Below are positions 2,372 to 64,000 of a DNA stretch of 64,000 bases, in pieces (within the stretch, counting starts at the first letter, position 1; the number at the start of each line of letters is the position of its first letter). The stretch comes from Rebecca billardiae RCC1528 (lineage: Eukaryota; Protista; Haptophyta), in the NCBI GenBank assembly GCA_965240325.2, contig OZ251242.1, positions 434,001 to 498,000 of the forward strand, read 5' to 3'. The notes under the pieces are model-generated. The model was not told the origin of the DNA. It saw only the letters and a list, made by a program, of their open reading frames with translations, and ran no database searches. The position numbers and the translations under genes were made by a program.

Positions 2372-5300
2372 GTGAGTGATGGCTGCGCGCCTGAGGCGCA
2401 TGCTGGGCGGGGCGGCCTCGCGCCACGCATGAGCGCGGAGTACGGCCCGTGGTACCCGCGGCGGTCTGACTTCACGCAGACGTTCGTCCGATCGCCCTTC
2501 GTCGGCGCCGACGGCCGCTCGCCCGGCTCTCGCAGTCCGGGCGCGCGCTCGAGATCGCGATCTCGCTCGCCGACGGCCGCCGCACCGCCGCCGCCGCCGC
2601 CGCCGCCGCCGATGACGGCACTGGCGACGATCGTGCCGGGCATGCCCGCGCGCATGGGCGTGGGCGCGAGTATGCCCGGCGCCTCGACCTCTCCGCGCTT
2701 CCGCCCGCGCCGCTGCTCCGCCCCGAGCGCCGCGGCCGCGCCACGCGCGCGCGGCCGCTCGGCCGGCGGCGGCAGCGGCGGCGGCGCGCTCACACCGACG
2801 CCGCCGTTCCGCCCGCGGCGCTTCTCGCACCTGAAGTACGCGACGTCGCCGATGGGCGAGCTGCCGTACCGCGGCTCGCTCTCGCCCGCCGCGCCGCGTG
2901 AGCTCTTGCGCGCTCTCGCCTCGCCGCCGCCGGCGCCGACGACGACGACGCCGACGCCGGCGACGCCGCGCTCTCGCGCGGCGGCGGTCGCCGCGGCGGT
3001 CGGCGCGGCCAACCGCGCGTCGGCGGCGCGCGCGTCGCAGGCGTGGCTGCGCGCGGAGCGGCTGCACGCCGCGGCGAGCGCGCTCGCGGCGCGCGCGCTC
3101 GCGCGCCGCACGCTGCGCGCGTGGCGCGCGGCCGCAGTCGACACGGCGCCGCGATGGTGGCTGGCGCGGCGGCGCGCGCTGCGCCGCTGGCGGCGGCGCG
3201 CCGCGCGCGCGCCGTCGGTCCGGCAGCTCGAGGCGCTGCACGCGGCGGCGCGCGCGCGCGCGCGCCGGGCGGCGCTGCGCGTGGCGCTGCGCCGCATGCG
3301 CGCGAGCGCGCGCCGCGCCGCGCGCGCGGCCGCGGCGGCGCGGCTGCCGCGCGCGCGCGCGCTGCGCGCGTGGGCGCCCGCGGCCGCGCGCGCGCGCGTG
3401 GCGCGCGCGCTCGCGGCGCGCGCGACGCGCCACGCGCGCGGGCGCGCGCTGTCGCGCGCGTGCGGACGCGTCGCCGCCGCGGCGATCGCGGGCTCGCGCC
3501 GCGCCGCGCGTGCCGCGCGGCCGGTGCCGCCCGCGCGCGCGACGCTGGCGGCGCGCGCGCTGCGCGCGTGGGCGCGGCGCGCGCGCGCCGCGGCCGCGCG
3601 CGCGCGCGCCGCGGCCGCGCACGCGCGGCGCACGGCCGCGGCGCGCTGGCGGCGCGCCGCCGGCATCGCCGCGGCGGCCGGCGCGGCCGAGCGCCGGGCG
3701 GCCGCCGCCTCGGGCCTGGGCCCGCGCGGCCGGCTCGTGAGCCGCTGGCGCGCCGCCGCCGCGCGCGCGCGCCGCGCCGAGCGCGCCGCGGCCGCGGCGG
3801 CGCGCGCGCGGCGCGCGGCGCGCGCGGCGCGCGCGCTCGGCGCGTGGCGCGCCGCGGCGGCGGCCGCGCGGCCCGGCGCAGCGGCCGCGGCGCGCGCGCC
3901 CTCCACCGCGGCGGCGCTTCGCTCGCGCGCGATCCGAGCGTGGGCGCGCGCCACGCGCGCGCGCCTCGCCGCGGCGCGCGCCCACCTCGCGCTGAGCGGC
4001 CGCGTGCGCGCGCGGCGCCGGCTGAGCGCGCTGCGCGCGCTGCGCGGCGCGGCGGGCGCGGCGGGCCGCGCGGCTGCGGCGGGCGCGCGGCTGCGCGGCC
4101 GCGCGGAGGCGGTGGCGCGCGGCCGCGCGCGGCGCGAGGCGTGGCTCGCGCTCGGCCGGGACCGCGCGCTCGCGCTCGCCGCCGAGACCGCCGCCGCGCA
4201 CGCGCGCACGCGCCGCCGGCGCGCGCTGCGCGCCGCCGCGGTTGCGTGGCGCGCGCGCGCCGCGCTCGCGGCCGCGGCGCGCGCCATGCTCGCGGCGGCG
4301 GCGGCGCGCGAGCGGCGGGCGCGCGGCGCGGCGGTGCAGGTGTGGCGCGCGGCGGCGGCGGTGGCGGCGCGCGCGTCGACGACGCTGCGCCGCCGCGCCG
4401 CCGCGCTGCTGCGCCGCCGCCTCCTCCGCCGCGCTGCCGCCGCCTTTGAGCGCGCCGCCAGCGGCGACGGCGCGGCGCGCGGCGCGGCGCGCGACGCGGC
4501 CGCGGCCGCGCTCGGCGCGCGCCGGCGCGCGGCGCGCGGCGCGGCGCTGCGCGCGTGGCGCGCGCGCGCGGAGGGCGCGCTCGCGCGGCGGTACGCGACG
4601 GAGGACGCCGCGGCCGAGCTCGCCGCCGCGCGCGCCTCGGCCGGCCTCGCGCGCTGGGCCGCGGCCGCGGCCGCGGCCGCGGCCGCGCGCGGCGCCGCCG
4701 CCGCCACCGACGCAGCGCTCGACGCGGCGGCGCGCGCGCACTGCGCCGCCGCGGCGCTGCGCGCGTGGCGGCCTGCGACGCGCGCGGCGGCGGCGCGGCG
4801 CGGCGCGGCGGCGCGCGCGGCGGCGCGCGCGCGCGCGGCCGACGCGCGCACGAGCTGGCGCCACTGGCGCCTTCGCGCCCTTGATGCCACCGGGCGCGCC
4901 GCCGCGCCGCGCGCCGCGGCCGCGGCGGCGGTGCGCGCGGTGCGCGCCGCGGCGCGCGGCGCGCGCCGCCGCGCGCGCGCCGCGGCGGCGGCGGCGCCGA
5001 CGCTGGAGAGCGCGCTGGCGCGCGGCGCGGTGGGCGTGTGGCGCGCGCGCGCCGCCGAGCGCGCGCACCGCGCCGCCGCGGCCGCGCGCACGCGCGCACG
5101 CCGCGCGCTGCGCGCGCTGCGCGCCACCGCGGCCGCGGCCGCGCGCGCCGCGGCCGCAGCCGCGCGGCCAGCGCCGCGCTCTGATGTGCGTGCGTGCGCG
5201 TGGCCGCGGTGGGTGCGCGCGGTGGGCGCGGCGGCGGCGCGCGCTGCGCGCGCGCGCGAGCGCGAGGCGCGCGCGCTCGGCGCGGCGGCGCGCCATTGGC

Positions 5301-7807
5301 GCGGGCTCGCCGCGCGCGAGCGCGCCGCGGCGCGCGCGCGGCGCGAGCTCAGGCGCGCATGCGCCGCGGCGCGCGCCGCGCTCGGCGACGCCGGCGACGG
5401 CGGCGGCGGCGGCGGTGGCGGGCCGCCGTTGGGTTCGGCGGCGGGTGGAGCGGAGCGCTCCTCGGCCTCGCGCGCGCTGGTGCCGCTCTCCCCCGCGCGC
5501 TCGCCGCGCCCACCCGACCCAGCGCCCGCCCGCCCGCCGCCGCCCGCGCCCGAAGCCGCCGTCGCCGCCGCAGCCGTGATCGCGACCGCGCGCCGGCGCG
5601 GCGCGCTCGCGCGCTGGGCGGCGACTGTGCTGCAGCGATGGGAGTGGGCGGGCGCGGCGGCGGCGGCGGCGGCGGCGCTCGGCGCGGCGGCGGCGCGCGG
5701 GCGTGCGCCGCGGCGGCTGCCGCTGCTCCACGCCTTCCGCCGCGCCGCGGAGGCCGCCGCGCTCTCGCGTGCCGGCGCGGCCGCGCGCGCGCGCGCCGAG
5801 CGCGCCGCGCCGCGCGCGGCCGCGCGCCGCGCGGCCGCGCGCTGGGCGGCGGCGCGCGGCGCGCGCCGCGCGCGCGCCGCCGCCACGGCGCGCGTGCGCG
5901 GCGCTCGGGCCGCGCGCGCACTCGAGCTGTGGGCCGAGCTGGCCGCGCGCACGGCCGACGCCGCGAACGCGCGCGCCGCGGCCGAATCGCACGCCGGCAT
6001 CGCGCGGCGCGCGCGCGCGCTGCGCGCGCTGCGGCAGCGCGTGTGGCGCGCCGCGTCGGCAGCGGCGCTGGCGGCGGCGGTCACGGCGTGCACGGCCGCG
6101 CGCGCGCGCGCGGCCTCCGCGGCGGCCTTCGCGAGCTGGCGCGCGGCGGCGGTGCCGACGGCGCGGCTGCGCACGGCGGTGCACGGCGCCTTCGGCGGCG
6201 GCGCGCTCGCGCTCGCCGCCCTCGCCGCGTTGCGCACGCTGCGCGCGCGCGGCGCGGCGCGCGCCGCGCGCGCGGCCGAGCGCGCAGCCACCGCCGCCGA
6301 GCGCGCCGCGCGCGCGCTGCGCGCGTGGCGTGAGTGGCGGCGTCGGCGCGCGGTGCTCGCGCGCGGCATCGCGGACGGCGGCGCGCCGGCGCAGCGCGCG
6401 CGCAAGCGCTTCGGCGCCGCCGGCGCGCTGCTCCGCGCGCACGCCGTCCGCCGCCTCCGCCGCCACGCCGCGCGCGCGCTGTGGGCGCGCGCCGCGCCGC
6501 GCCGCGCGCGCTGCCGGCGCGCCTTCGCGGCACTTGGCCGCGGCCGGCTCGCGCGCGCGACGCTCGCGACGGCGCAGCTGCTGGTGGCGGCGTCGCGCGG
6601 GCGCGCGGTGGTGCGCGCGTGGCACCACGTCGCGGCGAGCACCGCCGCCGAGCGCCGCCACTTCGCACGCCTCGCGCGACTGCGCGCCGCCACCCGAAAG
6701 CTCCTGACTGCAACTGCCAACGCACGACTCGGCGCCGCGTGCGCGGCGCGCGGCGCGCAGCGCGCGCGCGCGCGCGCGCTCGTGACGTGGGCTGAGCGCG
6801 CGCACCCGCCGGGCTCGGAGGGGAGCGTGCGCGCGGCGGCGAGCGCCTCGCTCGCCGTCTGGTGCGCCGCCTTCTCCGCGCGCCGCGCGCGCGGCGCCGC
6901 GCTCCGCCGCTGGCGCGCCACCATCGCCGCCGCGTGCGCGGCGGCCACGCACGCGCGCGCGGCCGCCGACGCAGCAGACGCGGCGGCGTGGGTGCTCGTC
7001 GCGCGCGCGCTGGCGCGGTGGCGCGCGGCGCTGCGCGGGTCGGGCGGCGGGCGCGCGGCGCGGCGGCGCGCCGCGCTCGCCGTGCGCGTGCGCCGCCCGC
7101 TCCGCGAATGGGCCCTCCAGTGCGCTCGCTCCGCCATTGCCGCCGGGTGCGCGGATCGCGCCGCGCGCGCGCGCGCGCTCGCGCGCTGGCGCGGCGCGGC
7201 GGACGCGCGCGAGCGCGCGTACGAGCAGCGCGCGGCGGCGGCGGTGGCGATCGACCGCGCGCTCGCGCTCGCCGAGGCGAGCGTCGCCACCGCGCTCGCG
7301 CGCGCCGCGCCGCCCGCACCGCCACGCTCGCTGCCTGCGCCCGCGCTGCGGCGCGCGCGCGCGCTTGCTGTGCGCGCGCGCGTCGTGCGCTCCTTCGAGC
7401 GCTGGTGGCACTACGCGGTGGCGGTGCGGCTGGCGGGCACGCTGCGGCTGATGGGGCCCGCGGATCTCGCCGCCGAGCCCGCGCCGCCCGCGCCCGGCGC
7501 CGCCGCGACGCTCGCGCCACCCGCGCCGCCCGCGGGCGGCGGCGGCGCCGGCGCCGCCGCCATCGCACGTGCACCTGAAGTGCTGCCGAGCACGGCGCCC
7601 ACGCCGGCGCGCGCCGCCGAGGCGCCGACGACGGGCGAGAGCGGCGTGCCGCGCGCGGTGGGCGTGACCTTCGCCGCCGTGGCCCCCGCCGAGGGCGGCC
7701 GCCGCGCGTCGCCGCCGCCGCGGCCGGGCCCCGGCGAGCGCATGCGCGCGCTCGCCGCGCGCGCGCGCGTCGCGCCGGCGCCGCAGTCCCAACGCGCGCG
7801 CGGCTGA
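2372..7807 (+). CDS. Sfi1-like centrin-binding repeat protein (Ala/Arg-rich); start uncertain
   Basis: Long stop-free frame with many recurring A/L-x-R-A-W-R motifs (RRALRRWRR, RALRAWA, AFASWR, RSFERWW). These resemble Sfi1 repeats. Confidence 0.6.
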   Translation: MSDGCAPEAHAGRGGLAPRMSAEYGPWYPRRSDFTQTFVRSPFVGADGRSPGSRSPGARSRSRSRSPTAAAPPPPPPPPPMTALATIVPGMPARMGVGASMPGASTSPRFRPRRCSAPSAAAAPRARGRSAGGGSGGGALTPTPPFRPRRFSHLKYATSPMGELPYRGSLSPAAPRELLRALASPPPAPTTTTPTPATPRSRAAAVAAAVGAANRASAARASQAWLRAERLHAAASALAARALARRTLRAWRAAAVDTAPRWWLARRRALRRWRRRAARAPSVRQLEALHAAARARARRAALRVALRRMRASARRAARAAAAARLPRARALRAWAPAAARARVARALAARATRHARGRALSRACGRVAAAAIAGSRRAARAARPVPPARATLAARALRAWARRARAAAARARAAAAHARRTAAARWRRAAGIAAAAGAAERRAAAASGLGPRGRLVSRWRAAAARARRAERAAAAAARARRAARAARALGAWRAAAAAARPGAAAAARAPSTAAALRSRAIRAWARATRARLAAARAHLALSGRVRARRRLSALRALRGAAGAAGRAAAAGARLRGRAEAVARGRARREAWLALGRDRALALAAETAAAHARTRRRRALRAAAVAWRARAALAAAARAMLAAAAARERRARGAAVQVWRAAAAVAARASTTLRRRAAALLRRRLLRRAAAAFERAASGDGAARGAARDAAAAALGARRRAARGAALRAWRARAEGALARRYATEDAAAELAAARASAGLARWAAAAAAAAAARGAAAATDAALDAAARAHCAAAALRAWRPATRAAAARRGAAARAAARARAADARTSWRHWRLRALDATGRAAAPRAAAAAAVRAVRAAARGARRRARAAAAAAPTLESALARGAVGVWRARAAERAHRAAAAARTRARRALRALRATAAAAARAAAAAARPAPRSDVRACAWPRWVRAVGAAAARAARAREREARALGAAARHWRGLAARERAAARARRELRRACAAARAALGDAGDGGGGGGGGPPLGSAAGGAERSSASRALVPLSPARSPRPPDPAPARPPPPAPEAAVAAAAVIATARRRGALARWAATVLQRWEWAGAAAAAAAALGAAAARGRAPRRLPLLHAFRRAAEAAALSRAGAAARARAERAAPRAAARRAAARWAAARGARRARAAATARVRGARAARALELWAELAARTADAANARAAAESHAGIARRARALRALRQRVWRAASAAALAAAVTACTAARARAASAAAFASWRAAAVPTARLRTAVHGAFGGGALALAALAALRTLRARGAARAARAAERAATAAERAARALRAWREWRRRRAVLARGIADGGAPAQRARKRFGAAGALLRAHAVRRLRRHAARALWARAAPRRARCRRAFAALGRGRLARATLATAQLLVAASRGRAVVRAWHHVAASTAAERRHFARLARLRAATRKLLTATANARLGAACAARGAQRARARALVTWAERAHPPGSEGSVRAAASASLAVWCAAFSARRARGAALRRWRATIAAACAAATHARAAADAADAAAWVLVARALARWRAALRGSGGGRAARRRAALAVRVRRPLREWALQCARSAIAAGCADRAARARALARWRGAADARERAYEQRAAAAVAIDRALALAEASVATALARAAPPAPPRSLPAPALRRARALAVRARVVRSFERWWHYAVAVRLAGTLRLMGPADLAAEPAPPAPGAAATLAPPAPPAGGGGAGAAAIARAPEVLPSTAPTPARAAEAPTTGESGVPRAVGVTFAAVAPAEGGRRASPPPRPGPGERMRALAARARVAPAPQSQRARG

Positions 7808-8040
7808 CGCGTGCGCCGAGATTGGATGCCGCGTGCAGCGCCGCGCGCGCGCACGCAAGCCGCGCGCTGCTTGCCGAGCCGACGGGGCGACGAGACGCGT
7901 TGCACCTGCAGCCGGCGCCATCGTTCTAGTGTCCGTCCAAGGGTGTGTCTGCAAGCAGGGGTCAGCACGCCAATTATTGTACCGCTGGAGGGTTCGAGAA
8001 CCTCAGAAAGGCGGTTCTCGATTCCGTATTCTGCAGAGCC

Positions 8041-48357: not shown

Positions 48358-51300
48358 TCAGTCTGAGTCGCCGACCGACGCCCGCGAGAACGCTGCACTC
48401 GACGTGCGATCCCTCTTCATCGCCGAGGACCTCCTGTTATTGCCGCCGTCGTCGTTGGACACTGCGCTCGACGTGCGATCCCTCCTCATCGCCGAGGACC
48501 TCCTGTTGCCGCCGTCGTCGTTGGACACCGACGACGAGCTCCGGCCGCGGCGCAGCCGGCCGCTGACGCGAGCCTCGCCCTGCCCGTCGCGCGGGTCGTC
48601 GTCCTCCTCCTCGTCGCGCGCCGCCGCCTTGGCCGCCGCCGCCGCCGCCGCCTCCGCGCTCAGCCTGCGCTCGACGTCGCTCGCCGTGGCACCGCTCGGC
48701 TTGCGGAAGGTGACCTCGTACAGCCGCTCGACCACGCGCGCGCCCTCGTCGTGCTCGCGCAGCAGCTCGCTCAGCTGCGGGGGGGGCGCGGCGAGGCGGA
48801 GGAGGAGGGGGCGTGAGGAGGAGGAGGGGGGGGGGGGCGGCGAGCGCGCGAGGCGCGCGGCGGCGGACGCGATCGGCATCAGCCCAACTCGAGAGGCCAG
48901 CGAGGGGGGGCGCGCGATCGGCGCGCGCGCGCGCGAGGGCTCGAGGGTACGCACCCGCTTCTGCACCGCCGCCACCTCCTTCGCGGCGAACTCGGCCGCG
49001 TCCTCCGCCCACGCGCCCAGCGCGGGCTGCACGACGCGCACGGCGTGCGCGTGCCAGCCATAGTGCGCGCGCGCGTACTCCCATAGCGCGGGCCACAGCC
49101 CGGGGCGCTCGTCGGCGAGGACGGCGCCGCGCTCGCGCTCGAGCCGGAGCGCGTCGTCGACCACCGCGCGGAGCGCGCCCACCGCGCTCGCCTCCGTCGC
49201 CACCCACGCCTCCGCGCCGCGTATCTTCTTGAGCAGGCCGTCGCGCGCGCCGATCGCCGCGGCCGCGCGCTGCAGCCGCGTGCTCTCGACGTCGAGCGCC
49301 GCGGCGGCGAGCTGCTCGTCGGAGGCGTGCGCGGCGCCCGAGCCGCGGCGCGCGCCGCGCGCCGCGAGCAGCGTCTGCAGCACCGGCGCGTCCGCCGCCT
49401 CCTCGCGCGCCGCGTCGTCGAGCGGCGTGTGCCCGAAGCGGTCCTCGGCGTTGAGGTCGACGCCGGGGACGGCGATTAAAAAGTGGCACGCGCTCACGTG
49501 CAGGCACGAGGTCGCGAGGTGGAGCGCGGTGCGCCCGTTGGGGTCGGCGGCGTTGACGGCGCAGCGCACGCGGATCAGCCGGCCGAGCTGCGCGACGTCG
49601 TCCGCCGCCGCCGCGGCGCACAGCTGCCGCGCCGCGTCGAAGCGGCCGAGCCGGCCGCCGCGCGCAAGCAGCAGCGCGGCGGTGCCGTCCTGCGCCGCTC
49701 CGAGCGCGTCCTGCAGCGGCGTCGCGCCCGCGCGGTCGGCGGCGTTCGCGTCGGCCTTGTGCTCGAGGAGCAGCCGGACGGCGGGCTCGCGCCCCGCCGC
49801 GGCGGCGAGGTGCAGCGCCGTGCGCTGCTCCGCGTTGGGCGCGTTCACGTCGCCGCCGTACCGCGCGAGCCGGCGGAGCGTGCGCAGCCCGTCGGGCGCG
49901 GCCGCGGCGGCGCACAGCGCCTCCGCCTGCGATCGCGAGCCGTGCGCGCCGCCGTGCCGCGCGAGCAGCTTGGCGGCGGCGCCGTGCTCGGACGCGAGCG
50001 CGTCGGCGAGCGGCGTCGCACCGCGCGCGTCCTGCGCGTTCACGCTCGCCTTCGCCGCGAGCAGCAGCTCGATCACGCGCGCGCTGCCGCCGCTCGCGGC
50101 AAGATGCAGCGCGGTGCGGCCATCAAAGTCGGCGTAGTCGACGTCGGCCTGCGACTGGTGAAGCAGCCGCGCGACCTTCTCGAGCTCGCCCTTGGCGCAC
50201 GCGGAGCAGAGCCGCGCGTGGTACAGCTCGCGCCGCTTGCGCTTCGCCACCGTCACCACGTTCTGCACCGAGCGCATGTCCACGCTGCGGATCGTCTCGA
50301 CCTGCGAGCGCGCGTCGGTCTCGCGTGAGACAGCGCTGGAGAGTCCGTCGGAGCGCGCCGAGCGGCCCGCGCTGCTCCCGGCATAGTCGGACGGCGCGTC
50401 GGAGCGCGCGCCCGAGCGGCCCGACATGCCCGAGCGCGCCGAGCGCGCGGTCGCGACGCCGTCGTACTGCCGCACCGCGTTGTCCATCAGCGCGTCCTCC
50501 TGCGAGGGGAAGAGCTTGAGCAACTCGCGGTAACGCTCGCGCGTGAGTGAGAACACGAGTGCGTGCGAGCCTTTGCCCACGCGCGCGCTCGAGATGTACC
50601 GGATGCCGAAGACGAACTGCACGTCGCCGACCGTCTCGCCCGGCCCGATCGTCTCGTACGCGTCCGCCGCGTCGTTGAGCGCGCCGCCCTCCTCCTCCGC
50701 GCCACCGTACGCCTCGACGGTGCCGTGCGCAACGAAGAGCAGCTCCTTGCACGCCTCGGCCACGCGGAAGATGACCGTCTCCGCCTCGATCTCGCGCTCG
50801 CGCAGCATGGAGGAGAGGCGGTTGAGGAAGCCGTCGGAGCAGCCGCGGAGGAGCGGCGCGCCGCCGACGAGCGCGCGGTTCGTGTGCGCCGCCACCTCCA
50901 TCTGCAGCCCGCTCGGCAGCCCCGCGTAGATCTCTTCGTTGGTCACGTTTGAGAGGGAGGCGGACTGAAGTCGCTTGATGAAGAACTTGCGCAGCCGCAC
51001 CTTGAGCTCGGCGGGCACGTCGATGTGCCGGATGTACGAGTCGGCGAGCTCGAGCCGCGCGCGCTTGCCCACGAGCTCGTCGTCCAGCTTCATCACCACG
51101 CCCGAGATGCCGCCCACCGTCCACGCGTACACCGTCATGTTGAGCGCCATCATCACCAGGTAGAAAATGAACTCGCCGTAGTTGGTCGGCAGCTGCGCGG
51201 TGCCGAGCGTGGTGATCATCGACACGACGAAGAAGAAGGAGACGATGTAGTGGTCAAACATCTCCGCCTCGGGCGAGGTGTAGTGCACCTCGTGCCCGCC

Positions 51301-54300
51301 GACCGCCTTGTTCTGCAGGCCGGCGTGGCGGCGCGCGCGGCGCGGTGAGCGGCGCGCGGCGGTACGCGGTACGCGACGCGGTACGCGGTACGCGGCGCGC
51401 GCACCTGCACGAGGTAGTCGTCGGCCCACGTGCGCTGCGTGAGCGTGTGCGCGAGCTCCGAGTAGCCCAGCACGTTCCACACGCAGCTGCACACGTGTAT
51501 CGTCAGCAGCAGCCCCGAGATGAACTTGAGCAGCCCGGCGCGCAGGTCGTCGTCGCTGCGCGCCGCGTCCCACGCGCGATACGCCTTCCATGCGTGCCGG
51601 CAGTACACGAGGCGGAGGAGGCGCAGCCCGACGACGACGGCGTGGTCGGCGCGCAGCGCGAGCGCGAGCATGTCGAGCGGCCACGACGCGAGCGCGTCCA
51701 GCGCAAAGTCGGTGTACAGGTACCGCCGCCGCACCTCGGCCGGGTCGAAGACCTCGCGCGAGTTCTCGTTGACGTGCGTGACGTGAAGCATGAGCAGCAC
51801 GCGCAGCACGTATGCCACGTCGAAGGCGAGGTTGATGTCGGTGAGCCAGTGCATCCGCGCGGTGTGCTCGAGGAACGAGAGCTGCAGCGGGATCACCGCA
51901 AAGTCGAACCCCACCTGGAAGAGGAACCAGCGGTGGCACGCGCCGTACAGCGCGGAGTGGAGCGAAACGACGTACCAAGGCTTCTCGCCCGCGATGTAGT
52001 CGCGCGCGCCGCCGCGCAGCCCGAGCGCTGCGAGCACGCCGCCCGGCGCGCCGAGCTCGGCCGCGCCGTCGGCGAACGCGCCGCCCGCGCCCGCGCGCCC
52101 GCCCTTGCGCCGGCGCAGCTCCGCCGCCGCCTCGCGCAGCGTGTTGGCCAGCCCCTGCCACGTCAAAAAGTCGTCCACCTCCTTGAGCATCGACGCGGCG
52201 GCGGCGGCGGCGGCGGCGGCCTCGGCGCTCGCGCCGCCGCCGGCGGCGGCGGCGCCGCCGGCGCCGCCGCCCGGCGCGCCGAGCGCGGCCGCGCCGCCGA
52301 GGAGGCCGGCGCCGCCGTCGGGCGCCGGGTCGACGGACACGCCGAGGTGCGCCGCCGCCCACGCGCGCACGTGCGCCGCGCGCGTGCCCGGCGGCAGCAC
52401 GACGACCGTCTCGATGAGCGCGAGCAGCTCGGCGGCGTGCACCTCCGCCGAGCCGTCCAGCCGCCGCTTGCCGATGCGCTGCACGATCGCGTCGGCGATC
52501 GCGTCGTACGCCGCCGTCGAGTTGAGCGCCGACTGCACCGCCTCGGCGTGCCGCGCGGCGCCCGCGGCCGCGCGCACGTGCTCCGCGCCGGCGTCAACGT
52601 CCGCGTCCGCGTCGGCGCGCGCGGCCGAGCCCGCGGCGCGCGCGCCCGCGCCCGGGCTGCCGCCGCGCGGCAACCCGCCGAGGGCCAGCCGGAGCTCAGG
52701 GACCGCGGCGGGCGCGCCCGCGCGCGACGAGCCGTCCTCGCCCGCGGCGGCGCCCTCAGCGCCCTCGCCCGAGCCGCCGCCGCCGTCGTCGTCCGCCTCC
52801 TCGGACGAGAGCAGGATCCACGAGGTGACGCCGACGACGAACTGGACCTCGGTCATCTGCTTGAGGCCGCGGCGGCGCGGCGGCGCGGCCGCCGAGCCGT
52901 CGGCCCACGCGTCGCGGCCGTGCTGCGCGCGCGCGCCGCCGCCGGGCGAGGCGGGCGGCGAGGACGAGGCGGGCGAGGAGACGCCGCCGGCCGCGCCCGC
53001 GGGCGCGTCCGTGCTCGGCGGCGGCGGCGCGGGCGCGACCGCGCCGTCCATCGCGGGCGGCATCGCCGGCGCGGGCGGCCCGGCCCCGGCCGCGCCCTCC
53101 TCCTCGAAGCCGCCGCGCCGCGCAGGGGACGACGGCGGCTCTCCGAACGGCGCCGCGCGCTCGTCGTGCGGCGCGGCGCGCTCGTCGTCGGGCGGCGGCG
53201 CGCTCGGGGCGAACGCGCGCGACGCCTCGAGCAGGTGCGAGACGAGGGAGCGGATCTCGGCCGAGTCCATCTCGCCGAGCGAGCCTGCGCGCGGAGCGGC
53301 GCGACCGCGCGCGGGCGGGGAGGGCGCGGGTCGGGGCGTGCCCTGATGAGCGCCTCTCTCGCGCGCTGTCTCGCGCGCGCGCGAGTGGCGCGCACCCTGC
53401 AGCTCGCGCACGTCGCGCAGGCGGACGGTGCCGCACTGCTTGCGGTCGAAGACGCGGAAGAGCGAGGTGATGACGGAGAGCGCGTCCTCCAGCGCCTCGG
53501 AGAGCGGCGTGCTGCGGGGCGTCGCCGTCGAGCGCGCCGTGCCGCCGCCGCCGCCGCCGCCGCCGCCGTCCGCGCAAACGGCCGGCGCGGGCGCGGGGCG
53601 CGCCGACGCGAGCGGCGACGACGGCGCGGACGGCGAGTGCGGAGGGCTGTCGCCGGGCGCGGAGTGCTGCCTGTGCGGCATCGGCGGCCCGTGCGCGCAC
53701 GCGGGCAGGCTCAGCTGCTTGTGCGGCATCGGCGGCCCCGCGGCCGCCAAAAGCGCCCGCCGACGGATCGAGTCGCCGCCGCCGGCGGCGCCGCCGAGCG
53801 TCTGCCGCAGCGGGTGGCCGCGCGTCGCGCGCCCGGCGGCGCTGGTGCTGTCGTCGTCAGAGCCGGACGCGCCGCTGACGCCGCGCGCCGAGCGGCGCGC
53901 GAAGCCCAGCATCGACGCGCGCCGCGCCTTGCGGCTGCTGTCGTCGGCCGCGCCGCCGCCCTGCAGCACCGTCGGTGCAGTCTGCCGCAGCGGGTGCGCG
54001 CGGCCGCGCGCGCCGCCGGCGACACTGTCCTCGTCGGAGCCGTCCGCGAGCGGGTTGCTGCCGCTGCGGTGGCGCGCGTCGCCGGGCTGCGCCTTCTTGA
54101 GCGTCTGCGAGGTGCGCAGCCCGCGCGTCACGCGCTGGATCGCCGACGCCGGCGACGAGCGGCCGCTGTCCTGCGCCGAATCGAGCGCGCCGCCGCTCGC
54201 CGAGCGCGGCCGCGCGCCGCGCGCCGCGTGCCGCGCGCTCAGGATCGACAGCAGGCGCCTCGAGCAGAAGAGCACGACGTGGCCGAGGTCAGAGAGGAAG

Positions 54301-57300
54301 ACCGGCTCGAGCTCGCCGTCGTCCGAGTCGGCCGCCTCGCTCACTCGCCGCTGCGCGCGCCCGCCCTCCAGCGCGAACGCCGACAGGTCCTGCGAGCCCG
54401 CGCGGCGCGAGCGCGCCTCGTCGACCGCGTGCGCGTGCCGCGAGAGCTGCAGCAGCGAGACGCCCGAGCCGCGGTGCGGGATCGCGGCGCGGACGGAGCC
54501 GACGCGCTTGAAGCTGCCCTTCCCGCCGCCGGGGCTGCGCAGCGCGCCGTCCTCCGCCACGTGCACGCCGAGCTCCATCATCGGCGGCGGGACGGCGCGC
54601 GCCGGGTGTGCCGCCGCCGCGGCCGCCGCCGAGCCGCGCGCCGCCGCCGCCGCCGCCGCGGCCGCCGCCGAGCGCCGCTCCATCTCGTCCGCCTCGGCGA
54701 GCTCGGGCAGCGCGGACGCGGGCTCGCTCGCGGGCGCGCCCGCGCCGAGCAGGCTGTGCAGCTCGGCGTACACCTCGCGCAGCACCTCCTCCGCCTCCTC
54801 CACCGTCAGCTGCAGCTCGCCAACGAGCACGGCGCCGAGCGCGCCGTGTTCCTCGAACCGACGCACGGCGCCGGGCAGGTGCGCGCGCGCGCTCGGCGAG
54901 AGGCGCGCGCCGAACGCGGCGCGGAGCATGCGCAGCCCGGCCTCGGCCTTGGGCAGCTGCAGCACCAGCTTGATGAAGCGCGCGCGGTCGGCCGTGCCGC
55001 CGTCCGCCCTGGCGGGCGGCGCGTCCCGGCGGCCGAGCCACGGCGCCGCGGCGGCGGCGGCGGCGGCGGCGGCGGCGTCCGAGCCGTCGGAGGAGCACGA
55101 CTCGGCGTCGGACGGGTCCGAGTCAGTGTCCGCGTCCTCGCCGTCCTCCACGCCGTACTCGCTGATCCAGATGTCCGCGTGCCACGCCAGCGTGCGGAAG
55201 AGCGCGCGCTGGTGACGCGTGAGCTCGGCCATTCGGCGCGCGAGCTTGGCGAGCGACGTCTCGACCGCGTGCGACTTGCGCAGCAGGCCGTCGTGGTCGG
55301 CCTTGCGCGTGCGCGCGCGCTCGTTGATCTTGCGGTTGAGCGCGTACATGTCGACCGACTCCGCCCGCGCCGCGCGCAGCAGCGCCTCGCACTCCGCGTA
55401 CGTGCGCGCGCCGTCGCCCGCGCCGCGCGCGAGCTCCGCCGCGGGCGGCAGCCGCGCGCCGCAGTGCAGCGCGAGCACGGACGCAATCTCGGCGTGGCGG
55501 CCGAGCGCGTCCATGAGCGGCGGCCGGCCCCAGCGGTCGGCGAGGTTGACGTCGGCCATCGCGGCGACGAGCAGGTACGCGCTCGAGATCGAGCCCGCCT
55601 GCACCGCCGCGTGCAGCGCCGTGCGCTTGTCCACGTCGGCGTCGTCGACCGGGGCGCCCATGTCTAGCAGGAAGCGCAGCTTGTCCGCGTCGCCCGCGGC
55701 CGCGGCGGCGCGCAGCCGCGCGCCCATCGCGGCCTCGTCGAGGCGGGGCGAGCTGCGCGCGATCTGGCGCGCGACGAGCACGTGCTCGTGCTCGATCGCC
55801 TCGTCGAGCGGCGCGCGCCCCCACCGGTCCTCCGCGTTCACGTCCGCGAGGTTGGCGAGCAAGTACTCGACGATGCGCGTCGAGCCGTCGGCCGCGGCGA
55901 CGTGCAGCGCGGTGCGCAGGTCGTAGTTGGCGGCGTTGATGTCGACGCCGTGCGCGACGAGCATCGCCATGTGCGCGAGGTCGCCCTTCGTCGCCGCCGC
56001 GAGCATCCGCTCCGCCGGCCGCTCGAGCTGCAGCACCGAGCCCGCCTTCGCGAGCTCGTCCGCCACGGCCGGGTGGCGCGTCTCGACGGCGTTTTGGATT
56101 GGCGTCGCGCCGAACCGGTCGCGCGCCGACGCGTCCGCGCCGAGCTCGCACAGCAGCCGGACGACGGCGAGGTTGCCCTGGATCGCGGCGAGGTGGAGCG
56201 TGGTGCGCTGGTCGTACGTGCCCACGCCCAGGTCGAAGCCGCGCGCCACGAGCGAGCGCACCGTCTCCGTGTCGCCCTGCCACACCGCAAGCTGCATCTG
56301 CGCGAGCTGCTCCTCGTTTTTTTCGACGATCGCGACGCGGATCGTCTCGCGGAGCGCCTCGTGCTCTTTCGCCTCGTCCTCCGAGAGCGCGTTGAGGTCG
56401 ACGCCCACCGCGCCGCCCGCGAGCTGCGCGCCCGAGCGGTCGAGCCCGTACCGCTTCAGCAGGTTCGTCAGGATGTGCTCCGCGTGCTCCGGGTACGAGC
56501 CGATCAGCTCCTCGTACGGCGCGGCGCCGAGCACGGCGAGCGTCACCTCGCCGTCGGGCGTCGCCGCGACCGTGTACGGCTGCGGCACGCCGGCGACGAA
56601 GGCGACCTCGCCGACGATCTGGCCCGGGCCGAGGTCGGAGCGCACGGTCGAGATGTGCACGTCGCCCTTCTTCACGTGCAGCGCGCCGCCCAGGCACCAC
56701 GGCAGCTCGGTGCTGCCGTCGCCGCGCTTGAAGAGGATCTCGCGCGGCATCATGTACCGCACGCGCAGCGAGAGCGCCAGCTGGTTGAGGAACTGCGGCG
56801 TGCAGCCGAAGAAGAGCGGCGTGGCGCCGAGCTCGCACGCGTACTGCTCGACGGCGACCTCGGTCTTGAGCGAGAGCGGGATCTGCGCGAAGATCCGCTC
56901 CGTCGCCGCCGCGCTCTTGCTCCGCTGGAACTCGTAGTGCGAGCGGATGCGCGCGCCGAGGTGCGGCGGCAGCTTGCGCTCCGTCACGTAGTCGTCGACC
57001 GCCTTGAGCAGCTGGTTGGCGTACACGGTGGACTCGTCGGTGCGCACGAGGTAGTGGAAGAGCGTGCCGAGCACGAACGCGTAGAACACGATCTGCACGA
57101 GCGCCACCACGATCGCGAAGATGATCTCCGACTGCACGGTGATCACGAGCGTGCCGTACCCGAGCGCTGCGGCGGGCGGCGGGCGGGGCGCGCGCGCGCG
57201 CGCGCGCGGGCGGCGGTGGCGAGGCGCGGCGGCGGTGGGCACGGAGGCGAGGCGGTGCGGCGCGGCGCGCCGGCGCCGCCGCCGCCGACGGCGCGCGGGA

Positions 57301-58264
57301 CCGGCCGCCGCGCACCCGTCATCCCCGCCCACGCCATGTACAGCCCCATCAAGTAGTTGTGCCAGCCGGTCGCGAGCGGAGAGCGCAGCTCGAGCTCGGG
57401 GTTGCCCGTGAGCAGCGCAAACTGCGCGTTCCAGTGCGGCAGCTCGAGCGGCTCGGCCGCCCACTTCTCGCCCAGCGCCCACCACACGCACGCCGCCCAG
57501 TGCGGCACGGAGACGAGCACGAGCGCGAACTTGTACACCGCGAGGAACGAGACGTTCGTGCTGAGGTCGTTGTTGATCTGCTCGACATAGTTGATGAGCT
57601 CGCGCACGCGCAGGATGCGGAAGCCCTGGAGCAGCTGGAAGAGCACCACCGCGTCGTGCAGCAGCGCGAGCGCGCGGCCCATGTGCAGCGCGGCGATGAT
57701 CACCAGGTCGCGGAACGCGTGCGCGATCGTGTACGGGATCACCTGCGGCTTGCCCGCCGGCGCCTCGGCCTCCGACTTGGCGCGGCCCGCGCCCTCGCGC
57801 CGCGCCTGCACGAGCGAGCCGATCACCCAGCCGAGCTCGAACAGGTCGGTGAGCACGTCGAGCGCGATGATCGCCGGCTCCGCCAGCGTGATGCGCGGCA
57901 GCGCCAGCCGCAACGGGATCGCGAGGTTCTCGTACGTGAGCACGGGCAGCCGCGCAATCTTGGCGTACTTCTTCAGCCGCTCGGAGCGCTCGCGCGCGGC
58001 GATCTCGGCCTCGAGCCGGCGGCGCGCCTCCTGCGCGGCTGCGTCGTTGCCCACGAGCACCGTGCGCCACTTGACGCGCGCCGCCTTGCCGTGGCCGTGG
58101 TGGCCGTGGTGCCGCGCGCCGCCGCCGCCCGTCCGCAGAATCCCCCGCCGCGCGTGCGCCGGCTTCGCCGCCGCGCCGGGCTCCGCCGCGCCGGGCTCGC
58201 CCTCCGCGGGCACGACCTGCTCGGCGCCGAGCCCGAGCTTGCGCCCCCAGCCGCCGAGCGGCAT
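48358..58264 (-). CDS. Tandem two-module Shaker-like K+ channel [6TM-CNBD-ankyrin]x2; introns 57167-57315, 53285-53395, 51313-51404, 48775-48954
   Basis: Four GT-AG introns give one frame of about 3100 aa. Module 1 has pore MTALGYG, CNBD GEVAFVAGVPQPYTV and ankyrins. Module 2 has S1-S6, pore MITTLGTA, a CNBD and ankyrins (DFDGRTALHLAA). Confidence 0.85.
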
Positions 58265-61541: not shown

Positions 61542-62109
61542 ATGGCGCGCGCGCCGCCGCCCTTGCCGTCGATGGTGCCCATCGTCACGGGCGGCGCGGA
61601 GGAGGCGCAGCGCGAGCGCGCGCCGGGCGTGCAGCCCGTGTGCGTGCTGCTCGTCACCGGCGGCAGCCGCGGCGCCGAGCTCGCCTTCTGCCACCCGCCG
61701 CGCGCGCCGCCGGCCGCGCACGAGGCGGCGGCGGCGGCGGGCGGCGGCGGCGGCGCGCCGATCGCGGGGTTCGACGAGCTGTCGGAGGACGTGCTCACCA
61801 CCGTGCTCGCGCCCAAGTCCACCCTCCGCGACCGCCCCATCGACCTGCGCATCGGCCCGATTCGCTTCATCGGCTTTGCGTCGAGCCTGGCGGACAGCGC
61901 GCAGCGCGACGGCGGCGGCGGCGGCGGCGGCGCGGAGGGGCTGCCGCCGCTGCGCTCGCGCGCGCCGTCGAAGGAGGAGCTCGCGCCAGGCGCGGTCGTC
62001 GCGCCCTCCCCGCGCGGCGGCGGCGGCGGCGGCGGCGCGGCGGGCGGCGCGGCGGGCGGCGCGGCGGGGGGCGGCGTCGACGAGCGAGCGTGCAGCGGCG
62101 CGGCGGCGT

Positions 62110-62161
<52 letters not shown>

Positions 62162-63209
62162 GACGCCGATGGCGGGCGCGTCCACGTCCGCGTCCGCGCG
62201 TGACGACGAGCCGCAGCTGTGCGTGTGCACCGTCGCGTTCGTCCTCGAGACGCGCGCGGGAGCGGACGAGCCGCTCCGTCGCGCGTGCGCGCGCGCGGCC
62301 GAGCAGCTGTCACGAGCGGTCGCCTATGAGCAGAGGACGGCGGTGGCGGCGGACGGGGAGGTCGGGCCCGGGTGCTTCGCGTCGGTGCTGACGGCGCCGC
62401 CGGGCGCGCACGCCGCGCTCGCCAGCGCCGCCGCGAGCGCGGGCTCCTTCGGCGCGGCGCCACCGCTGGACGGCTGGCTGCCGCTGTCGCGCCGCGTACT
62501 TGTGCCGAGCGCGGACCTAGGCGGCGCGCCGGGCGGCGGCGGCGGCGGCGTGCTCGACGGCGGCGGCATGCCGCCGCTCACGCCGCTTGCGAGCATGGGC
62601 AGCGGGCTCGGCGCGGCGCGCGACCCGCAGCGCAGTGGCGCGCTGGCCGCCGCGGCGGCAGCCTATGCGCACGGCGGGCTTGGCGGCGCGCTGCCTGCGC
62701 GCGGCGGCGCGCACGGTGGTTGCGGCGGCGGCGGCGGCGCGAGCGGCGGCGGCGGCGGCGGCGGGCGCTACCTCGAGCTCGAGCTGAGGCGGCTGCGCGC
62801 GGCGCGCGCGCGGCACGCCGCGGGCATGTCCGCGCTCGCGCACGCCGCCGGCGCCGACGGCGCGGCGGGCGGCGGTGTGGGCGGCGCGGGGAGCAGCCCG
62901 GTGGGGGCGGCGGGCGCGGCGGCGGCGTTGGGCGCGGCGGCGGGCGCGGCGGCGGCGGCGGGCGCGGCGTTGGGCGCGGCGGCGGCGTTGGGCGCGGCGG
63001 CGGGCGCGGCGGCGGGCGCGGCGGCGGGCGCGGATGCGCGGCAGACGCCGCACGCGCCGCACGCCGTGGCGCGCGCCGAGGCGGCGCGCCCCGACGCCGC
63101 GCTCAGCCTGGGCGCGGAGCGCGGCGGCGCGCTCGACGGGGCGAGCGGCGGCGGCGGCGGCGCGTGCGGCGCGGCCGAGGGCGGCGGTGGTGGCGCGCGC
63201 GCCGCTCAG

Positions 63210-63241
<32 letters not shown>

Positions 63242-64000
63242 GGCGGCGGGCTCGGCCGGCGCGGGGTGCCACGCCGCGCCGAGCGCGCGCGCGGCTCTCC
63301 GGCAGCTGGCGCTCGCGGAAGCGCTCTCGCCGCCGCCGCCGCCGCCGCCGGCCGCCGCGGCGGCGGCGGCGGCGGCGCACGCGAACGGCGCCGCAGGCGG
63401 CGCGGCCGCGGGCGGCGGCGGCGGCGGCGCGCCGAGCGCGCTGCCGCCGCCCGCCACGCCGGGCGGCGGCGCGGCGGGCGCGTGCGCGGCGTGCTGCGCG
63501 TGCGCGCAGCACGCGCACGCGGCGGGCGCGCCGGACGCGCTCGCCTCCGCGCTTGCGCCGTGGGCGGGCGGCATCGACCACTGTCTTCTCGTCGCGCTGG
63601 CGGTGTTGCGCGGCGCGCCCGCAACGAGAGTCTGGCTGAACGAGCGCGTGTCGATCTGGCTGCTTCCGCCGCACGCGGGGGCGTTCCGCGCGCCGCCCAC
63701 GGACCCGCGGCTGGCGGTGCCGCAGCAGCAGCCGCGAGGGCAGCCGCCGCAGCCGTCGACGCCGGGGATGGCGCCGCGCGGGGCCGCGGGCGCGGGCGCG
63801 CGCTCGCGCGCCGGCTCCGACGCCGCCACGCCGCCGCCGCCCGCGCGCCGCGCGCCCGCCGCCGCCGCCGCCGCGCGCTGGAGTGCCGAGGCGGAGGCGG
63901 CGGCGGCGGCGGCCGAAGCGCTCGGCATGCTCGAGCGCGCGCCGCCGCGCGCCGAGGGCGGCGCCGCCGCCGCCGGCGCGCCGCCCGGCGGCGCGCGCGC
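61542..64000 (+). CDS. NPRL3: GATOR1 subunit NPRL3/Npr3-like, N-terminal part (runs off the window)
   Basis: Frame absent from the ORF track, apparently because it has no stop before the window end. PVCVLLVTGGSRGAELAFCHP, SEDVLTTVLAPKSTLRDRPIDLRIGPIRFIG and LSRAVAYEQR match the NPRL3 N-terminal longin region. Confidence 0.75.

Follow-up and report, generated by a model that had tools for sequence, protein, structure and literature searches.

A predicted two-module channel gene with unequal pores in Rebecca billardiae and its algal relatives

Can one polypeptide carry two diverged Shaker-like channel subunits, and what kind of pore would such a chain line? The question is raised by a locus of Rebecca billardiae RCC1528 (Haptophyta), in a window of 64,000 nucleotides (assembly GCA_965240325.2, contig OZ251242.1, positions 434,001 to 498,000), which is the whole stretch of DNA analysed here and from whose first letter all coordinates are counted. 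An initial annotation of this window had described one spliced frame with two complete but non-identical channel modules, each followed by a cyclic nucleotide-binding domain (CNBD) plus ankyrin repeats. Read from its sequence, the interval 58264-48358 on the minus strand is one protein-coding gene of four exons and ~3,184 codons, in which the order 6TM (six transmembrane segments)-pore-CNBD-ankyrin occurs twice, with a coding linker of ~1,150 residues between the two copies. We consider it probable, taking these points jointly, that the gene is a member of a conserved family of algal two-repeat channels in the CNBD clade and that its product would form a dimeric 2+2 pore. Fusing two diverged subunits in this way fixes their order and stoichiometry, a constraint that channel physiologists otherwise engineer with concatemers.

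Gene structure and coding signal

The local DNA is ~70-82% GC. Because open frames of more than 1,000 codons are common here on both strands, an open frame alone is no proof of coding. GC content at third codon positions (GC3) was 0.98, 0.97 and 0.955 in three reference stretches, the exons of the initial annotation. In the long middle stretch it held at 0.91-1.00 in a single frame from 57166 to 51405, with 0.97 over 1,146 linker codons; codon-position periodicity was absent from the 5′ and 3′ flanks and from the introns. Together with colinear homologues and 42 loci in the same genome, both described below, the GC3 signal through the linker bears out the earlier description of one spliced frame.

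Three minus-strand frames carry channel sequence, and the two short frame-changing introns share a GTGCGC donor and a CAG acceptor. Exon 1 (57316-58264) starts with an ATG at 58264 and encodes the N-terminus and, for module 1, a divergent voltage-sensor-like S1-S5, pore helix 1 and the filter's opening residue (..GMT). Its GC content at codon positions 1/2/3 is 0.73/0.48/0.98, and it aligned with the N-terminal part of homologues P0001-P0006. Intron 1 (57167-57315; 149 nt, GTGCGC...CAG, phase 1) cuts the first filter as T|ALGYG (..GMT|ALGYG..), which agrees with the earlier proposal that a TALGYG filter is joined across an intron. The frame changes across this intron and codon periodicity is absent (0.92/0.94/0.92). 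In intronless paralogues, LT-MGYG runs uninterrupted where intron 1 sits in the window gene.

Exon 2a (53396-57166) encodes filter 1, S6, the C-linker, CNBD 1, ankyrin 1, a post-ankyrin region, a spacer and an EF-hand-like helix-loop-helix; exon 2 is colinear with homologues up to its residue ~1000, at a GC3 of 0.97. Both introns of the initial annotation stand, but its uninterrupted long exon does not. We call a third, in-frame intron (intron 2, 53285-53395; 111 nt, GTGCGCG...GCGCAG, after ..VRELQG) because this region (53429-53260) is the single GC3 dip of the long exon, at 0.73-0.83, and has splice-like ends, because the insertion is missing from homologues, and because of stop codons in paralogue L028. 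The insertion is missing from all homologues and from 10 of 12 paralogues, which read ..LQG-x-LGE..; the two closest paralogues do have an insertion at this point, and in L028 the donor is identical and read-through meets stop codons. The spliced join would read ..VRELQGSLGEMDSAEIRSLV.., and the predicted protein is therefore ~3,184 residues long, not 3,221.

Exon 2b (51405-53284) encodes the rest of the EF-hand-like domain, a second EF-hand relic and S1-S5 of module 2. Intron 3 (51313-51404; 92 nt, GTGCGC...CAG, phase 0) falls between S5 and pore helix 2 (..DYLVQ|NKAVGG..) and changes the frame. Exon 3 (48358-51312; GC3 0.955) encodes pore helix 2, filter 2, S6, the C-linker, CNBD 2, a Ser/Arg motif, ankyrin 2 and a tail, and ends with the stop codon at 48360-48358.

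The two modules and their filters

Database, family and solved-structure searches were run with the exons as separate queries, not with the joined spliced protein. In Pfam, both modules matched cNMP_binding as well as several ankyrin families, and module 2 also matched Ion_trans. Module 1 has a conserved KWRTVLVG at its N-terminus and an S4-like segment, FQLLQGFRILRVRELINYV, at 57640-57584. No family was matched in the Pfam scan of exon 1, and only GORK matched this sensor among solved structures, over the S4-S5 region and at a marginal E of 0.003. From filter to CNBD, module 1 has SKOR as its best solved-structure match (E 3.4e-19). Filter 1 is TALGYG, of the K+ type, assembled over intron 1; its (A)LGYG lies at 57164-57153 and is followed by S6 and the C-linker.

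In module 2, Ion_trans covers S1-S5 at 51920-51420, and family alignments place S4 at 51638-51570 in exon 2b. The voltage sensor of this module matched the solved structures of KCNH5, HCN1 and KAT1, whereas from pore helix to CNBD hERG, SthK and SKOR scored about equally (~1e-13). Filter 2, TTLGTAQLPTN, follows pore helix 2 in exon 3, with TTLGTA at 51213-51196. It keeps the lower T-x-G part of a canonical filter, and the upper Y-G part is replaced. The initial annotation had correctly noted this loop as lacking GYG and had called it degenerate, a term that we would drop. GYG was found in pore 2 of 0/20 paralogues and 0/11 homologues, where a distinct motif, T-x-L-G-x-x-Q-x-P-x-N, occurs: its G-x-x-Q-x-P-x-N part is present in 15/20 paralogues, and foreign homologues have the same pattern. 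Because pore 2 has a motif of its own that is conserved across paralogues and homologues, we read it from these alignments as specialised, not decayed. In pore 1, [ML]GYG was found in 9 of the 10 paralogues where this pore was seen (20 loci fetched), as well as in most homologues. The unequal pores noted earlier are thus a conserved family trait, with GYG in pore 1 versus a non-GYG pore 2.

The CNBD-homology domains were both matched by Pfam cNMP_binding, at 56759-56502 in module 1 and 50796-50521 in module 2. The module 1 cassette, GEVAFVAGVPQPYTVAA (56612-56562), aligned to SKOR GEISILCNIPQPYTVRV with Gln in place of Arg. Its PQPYTV, earlier noted as SKOR-like, is identical residue for residue to the SKOR phosphate-binding cassette. 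This SKOR-like cassette with its Gln fits the earlier assignment of the CNBDs to the non-binding plant-Shaker type. The canonical Arg position, which we take to be that of the HCN and PKA cassettes, is without Arg in both modules, as had been claimed; the claim needs amending for the module 2 cassette (50640-50584), where a family-wide Arg stands one residue before it, in G[IL]R[HY] (50584-50640, minus strand). Directly after CNBD 2 comes the Ser/Arg motif GVATARSARSGMSGRS (50460-50413). Its pattern, G-x-A-T-A-R-S-x-R-S-x-x-S, is kept from haptophyte-type members to Rhodelphis and Tetraselmis and is a candidate phosphorylation site.

Ankyrin repeats lie at ~56297-55455 and ~50229-49348. Pfam ankyrin families matched both modules at an E of 1e-33, and the ankyrin regions of SKOR, GORK and AKT1 match as well. 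Each ankyrin block is trailed by a helical, coiled-coil-like stretch.

Family, ancestry and published tandem channels

The window gene is one of many. A six-frame search of the Rebecca billardiae assembly (72 Mb, 41 contigs) with module 2 returned 42 strong module-2-type matches (for example at loci L009-L028), each with a weaker module-1-type match upstream on the same strand. The two modules are spaced 5-8 kb apart in 39 of these loci and 24-40 kb apart in three. At many of the 42, a single open frame of 2,000-3,300 amino acids takes in both modules, and several loci are intronless single open reading frames (ORFs) of ~2,650-2,690 amino acids (L011, L012). In L011 and L012 the frame is unbroken between S5 of module 1 and pore 2; indels made an ungapped comparison of their identity uninformative. 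By comparison with this family size, in a 72-Mb genome, land plants have few Shaker genes (nine in Arabidopsis). The family is also widespread in marine algae.

Homologues were sought with exon 2 as the query, scored on residues 1-600, and the search returned full-length proteins of 2,516-2,899 amino acids. Two of the homologues come from Diacronema lutheri (62% and 52% identity); others are Rhodelphis marinus and Tetraselmis striata models, and several lie on contigs that barely exceed their ORFs. Complete MMETSP transcript ORFs are found among the two-module homologues (P0003, P0080), and the P0009 cluster, from Pelagophyceae sp. CCMP2097, includes a transcript ORF of 2,987 amino acids from the same collection. 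Such complete single-transcript orthologues contradict separate transcripts for the two modules, the outcome that the initial annotation had named as its refutation. Ten homologues of 2,500-2,990 amino acids were colinear by BLAST with exon 1, exon 2 and exon 3, with conserved blocks inside the linker. Judged from these sequences, the tandem design is common to several algal groups: haptophyte-type algae, a pelagophyte, Rhodelphis and Tetraselmis.

The order of the modules is equally conserved. In 10/10 homologues, module 1 of the window gene scores best against the first module and module 2 against the second. A maximum-likelihood tree, in which the two modules served as reciprocal outgroups, split first from second modules with 100/100 support, and the internal branching of one half is mirrored in the other. 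We therefore conclude that the fusion is old, with co-evolved halves; the sequences point to one old duplication as the source of both modules. A word search for single-module relatives, queried with residues 1-340 of exon 3, returned nothing beyond two tandem-channel fragments.

Two-repeat tandem CNBD and Kv-like channels were first reported by Pozdnyakov et al. (2020, Sci Rep; PMC7576140) in a sequence survey, which found them in dinoflagellates, oomycetes and a chlorarachniophyte and in no other SAR groups. The published channels resemble the window family in having two 6TM-CNBD repeats per chain, in the placement of the repeats in separate clades, which that survey took to imply co-evolution and specialisation, and in a presumed dimeric pseudo-tetramer (PMC7576140). 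They differ in their filters, which are TVGYG or close variants in both repeats, and ankyrin is unmentioned in their description (PMC7576140). The window family has ankyrin repeats in each repeat, a linker EF-hand relic, TALGYG in repeat 1 and TTLGTA, never GYG, in repeat 2. The family is set apart from these SAR channels by their published description; the matches of our word-based searches were mostly ankyrin proteins, with no oomycete or dinoflagellate tandem sequences among them. In the literature searched, no tandem Shaker-like family with ankyrin repeats is described, and tandem-channel terms matched only PMC7576140. The suggestion that this is not a characterised class must therefore be narrowed, since two-repeat tandem CNBD channels are known by sequence (PMC7576140), but the ankyrin-bearing two-module family with an asymmetric filter appears undescribed.

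Pore assembly and the linker

How would such a chain assemble? Module 1 follows the plan of plant SKOR, GORK and AKT1: S1-S6, a TxGYG filter, a C-linker, a CNBD-homology domain from whose cassette the phosphate-binding Arg is missing, and then ankyrin repeats. Plant Shaker channels, however, are tetramers of single-module chains, whereas here two modules that are only ~25% identical are fused. Module 2 departs further from the plant channels, as it lacks TxGYG and its similarity to KCNH and SthK about equals that to SKOR; nor was a KHA domain identified in the window protein. Two-pore channels (TPCs) offer a parallel in design. They carry two Shaker-like 6TM domains per chain, have non-equivalent filters I and II, and form homodimers of pseudo-tetrameric symmetry, and plant TPC1 has EF-hands in its linker (PMC13114498). 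Unlike the window gene, TPCs are without CNBD and ankyrin domains. The four module pieces had no TPC chain among their solved-structure matches, all of which belong to the CNBD clade; with sequence kinship undetectable in these matches, we rejected the window gene as a TPC relative. The resemblance is one of convergent design. The concatenated CNBD-channel repeats of CNGK (tetraKCNG) in animals and choanoflagellates likewise fix subunit order, but there are four of them, with functional cyclic-nucleotide sites and no ankyrin, against only two repeats between ATG and stop in the window gene.

By analogy, we infer a 2+2 pseudo-tetramer as the most economical assembly. Two polypeptides would associate in the manner of TPCs, as a homodimer with alternating modules, because the TPC chain is organised in the same way. 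This arrangement would also fit published work on plant Shaker channels, which describes GORK tetramers with symmetry reduced from C4 to C2 and AKT1:AtKC1 heteromers of 2:2 stoichiometry. In those dimers of dimers, conducting and modulatory subunits, or two conformers, are combined; the AKT1-AtKC1 stoichiometry is set by the assembly of separate gene products, whereas that of the window protein would be hard-wired by fusion. The proposed pore would be lined by two GYG and two non-GYG strands in fixed alternation around one axis. Of the earlier proposal of a fixed 2+2 dimer with an asymmetric filter, the asymmetry is thus borne out as a conserved feature and the assembly stands as an argument from analogy. 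The protein would be a cation channel, probably K+-conducting, with a selectivity that is not predictable. Voltage dependence would likely be weak or modulatory, because the S4 segments of both modules carry just two or three regularly spaced arginines in family alignments. Cyclic nucleotides are probably not ligands of the CNBD-homology domains, which, with the ankyrin repeats, would act as a docking platform and gating ring of the kind found in SKOR, GORK and AKT1. With a GYG and a non-GYG strand kept side by side in distant algal lineages, the family offers a natural test of the number of canonical strands that a K+ filter requires.

Alternatively, only module 1 would line the pore, with four chains contributing, and module 2 would serve, without conducting, as a sensor or scaffold unit, or would make up another pore of its own. 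A pore 2 without GYG in every member seen would suit this arrangement, as would the existence of silent Shaker-type subunits, of which AtKC1 is a published example. Nonetheless, we regard it as unlikely: the pore helix, filter-like loop and S6 of module 2 are complete and conserved, with a family-wide motif of their own, and characterised channels with two-domain chains assemble as dimers, as TPCs do (PMC13114498). In a tetramer of two-module chains, a single complex would contain eight pore domains. To our knowledge, every characterised channel with two domains per chain is a dimer, K2P included.

Several points weigh against the reading of the locus as a four-exon gene whose product forms a dimeric 2+2 channel. 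The assembly, stoichiometry, selectivity and gating of a two-module channel are all argued by analogy, and the gene model in Rebecca billardiae is known from the DNA alone. Additional in-frame introns may lie in the low-complexity linker. The voltage sensor of module 1 is so divergent in sequence that Pfam misses it, and its solved-structure match is confined to S4-S5. A non-glycine at the last position of filter 2 may be incompatible with the canonical K+ filter conformation. Finally, the Arg beside the canonical cassette position of CNBD 2 leaves some chance of ligand binding.

The long cytosolic linker between the modules holds a low-complexity spacer that separates a conserved post-ankyrin region from an EF-hand-like domain. 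The EF-hand-like motif FRVFDRKQCGTVRLRDV (53459-53409) belongs to the first helix-loop-helix, at 53504-53397 in exon 2a. By family alignment, the remainder of the domain consists of LGEMDSAEIRSLVSHLLEASRAF, a variable spacer and MTEVQFVVGVTSWILL (52856-52809), and a second, degenerate EF-hand relic, VQRIGKRRLDGSAEVHAAELL, with a loop of the wrong length, lies at 52484-52404. FRVFDRKQCGTVRLRDV falls within a block that all homologues conserve. In the pelagophyte protein, the best EF-hand_6 stretch (family E 1.8e-8 over the whole protein) spans the residues homologous to this motif; farther along, a canonical DKDGDGEIPYDE loop is aligned to the degenerate VQRIGKRRLDGSAEVHAAELL of the window gene. 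With the isolated segment of the window gene and of nine paralogues as Pfam queries, the best match below threshold was to an EF-hand family in 8/10, with E down to 3.6e-4; the window segment itself matched EF-hand_9, EF-hand_6 and EF-hand_8 at E 0.009-0.15, under Pfam cut-offs. Scores were at most 20.5 bits, against a gathering cut-off of 25 for plain EF-hand models. By sequence, then, the linker motif appears to be derived from an EF-hand, as had been suggested.

Calcium regulation, the other half of that suggestion, fares less well. Regulation of the window copy through this EF-hand, as in plant TPC1, would draw on the homology of FRVFDRKQCGTVRLRDV to an EF-hand that Pfam recognises in the pelagophyte member, on the canonical loop nearby, on the preference of most segment copies for EF-hand families and on the near-canonical loops of paralogues L010 and L011 (D-S-N-S-S-G and D-A-D-D-S-G). 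However, the window loop, D-R-K-Q-C-G-T-V-R-L-R-D, lacks the pattern of oxygen ligands at positions 1, 3, 5 and 12. Calcium sensing is quite unlikely in this copy because Lys and Cys occupy ligand positions 3 and 5; the wrong loop length of the second relic and the sub-threshold rank of every Pfam score also speak against it. The EF-hand relic of the window copy is probably structural, not a calcium sensor, while calcium sensing is plausible in some family members, to judge by their loops.

Some members carry far larger linkers. On contig 8, 1595904-1555060 (L029-L033), an open frame of 13,615 codons has a GC3 of 0.86-0.96 except in its last 115 codons. This giant paralogue has 38 NCRFL (LOV) signatures in alternating units, plus RGS-like sequence, between its channel modules. 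Two other wide-spaced loci, C8:1488203-1525204 and C3:3524657-3549405, have 24-36 kb between modules. The Pfam scan of the window gene found no LOV or RGS domain, and it is a plain family member. Tentatively, and with the balance somewhat against it, the linker could be seen as a place where evolution plugs in sensors (every member with EF-hands, near-canonical in some, and three giants with arrays of LOV/RGS blue-light modules) on an obligate dimer with a mixed pore and new selectivity or gating, with the window gene as the chassis for candidate light-regulated channels. In this genome, the channel halves of the giant LOV-array proteins come from this family, and a plain member is the control for any claim of light gating.

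The linker is also where a division of the locus would have to fall. Stop codons are rare at 75-80% GC, so two adjacent same-strand genes might merely share an open frame; long chance ORFs are indeed common, with one of 1,440 amino acids on the opposite strand of this region, and reverse frame 0 of the linker is without stops. We reject this division as highly improbable: GC3 in the linker is at least 0.91, and only so in the coding frame, homologues share conserved linker blocks, complete single-transcript orthologues exist, and the 42 loci of the genome show the same order and spacing. A decaying, non-functional paralogue, to which the 42 family copies, the short or stop-containing matches of the genome search and the long low-complexity linker and C-terminus of the window copy might point, is very hard to credit and was likewise rejected, as the three reference stretches are stop-free over 3,220 codons with a codon bias equal to that of any exon (GC3 0.955-0.98), no motif is disrupted and the splice sites are canonical.

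The remaining features lie outside the modules. The post-ankyrin-1 region (window ~54100-55400, minus strand; exon 2 residues ~590-1000) comprises ~400 residues conserved among haptophyte-type homologues, and no Pfam family matched it. The protein ends in a helical tail and then a low-complexity C-terminus with two SNDDGGN repeats. In this tail, at 48439-48525 on the minus strand, the direct peptide repeat ..SSAVSNDDGGN.RRSSAM.RDRTSS.. occurs in two copies. Elsewhere in the window, 4001-8000 and 62001-64000 are 84-90% GC, well over the window average.

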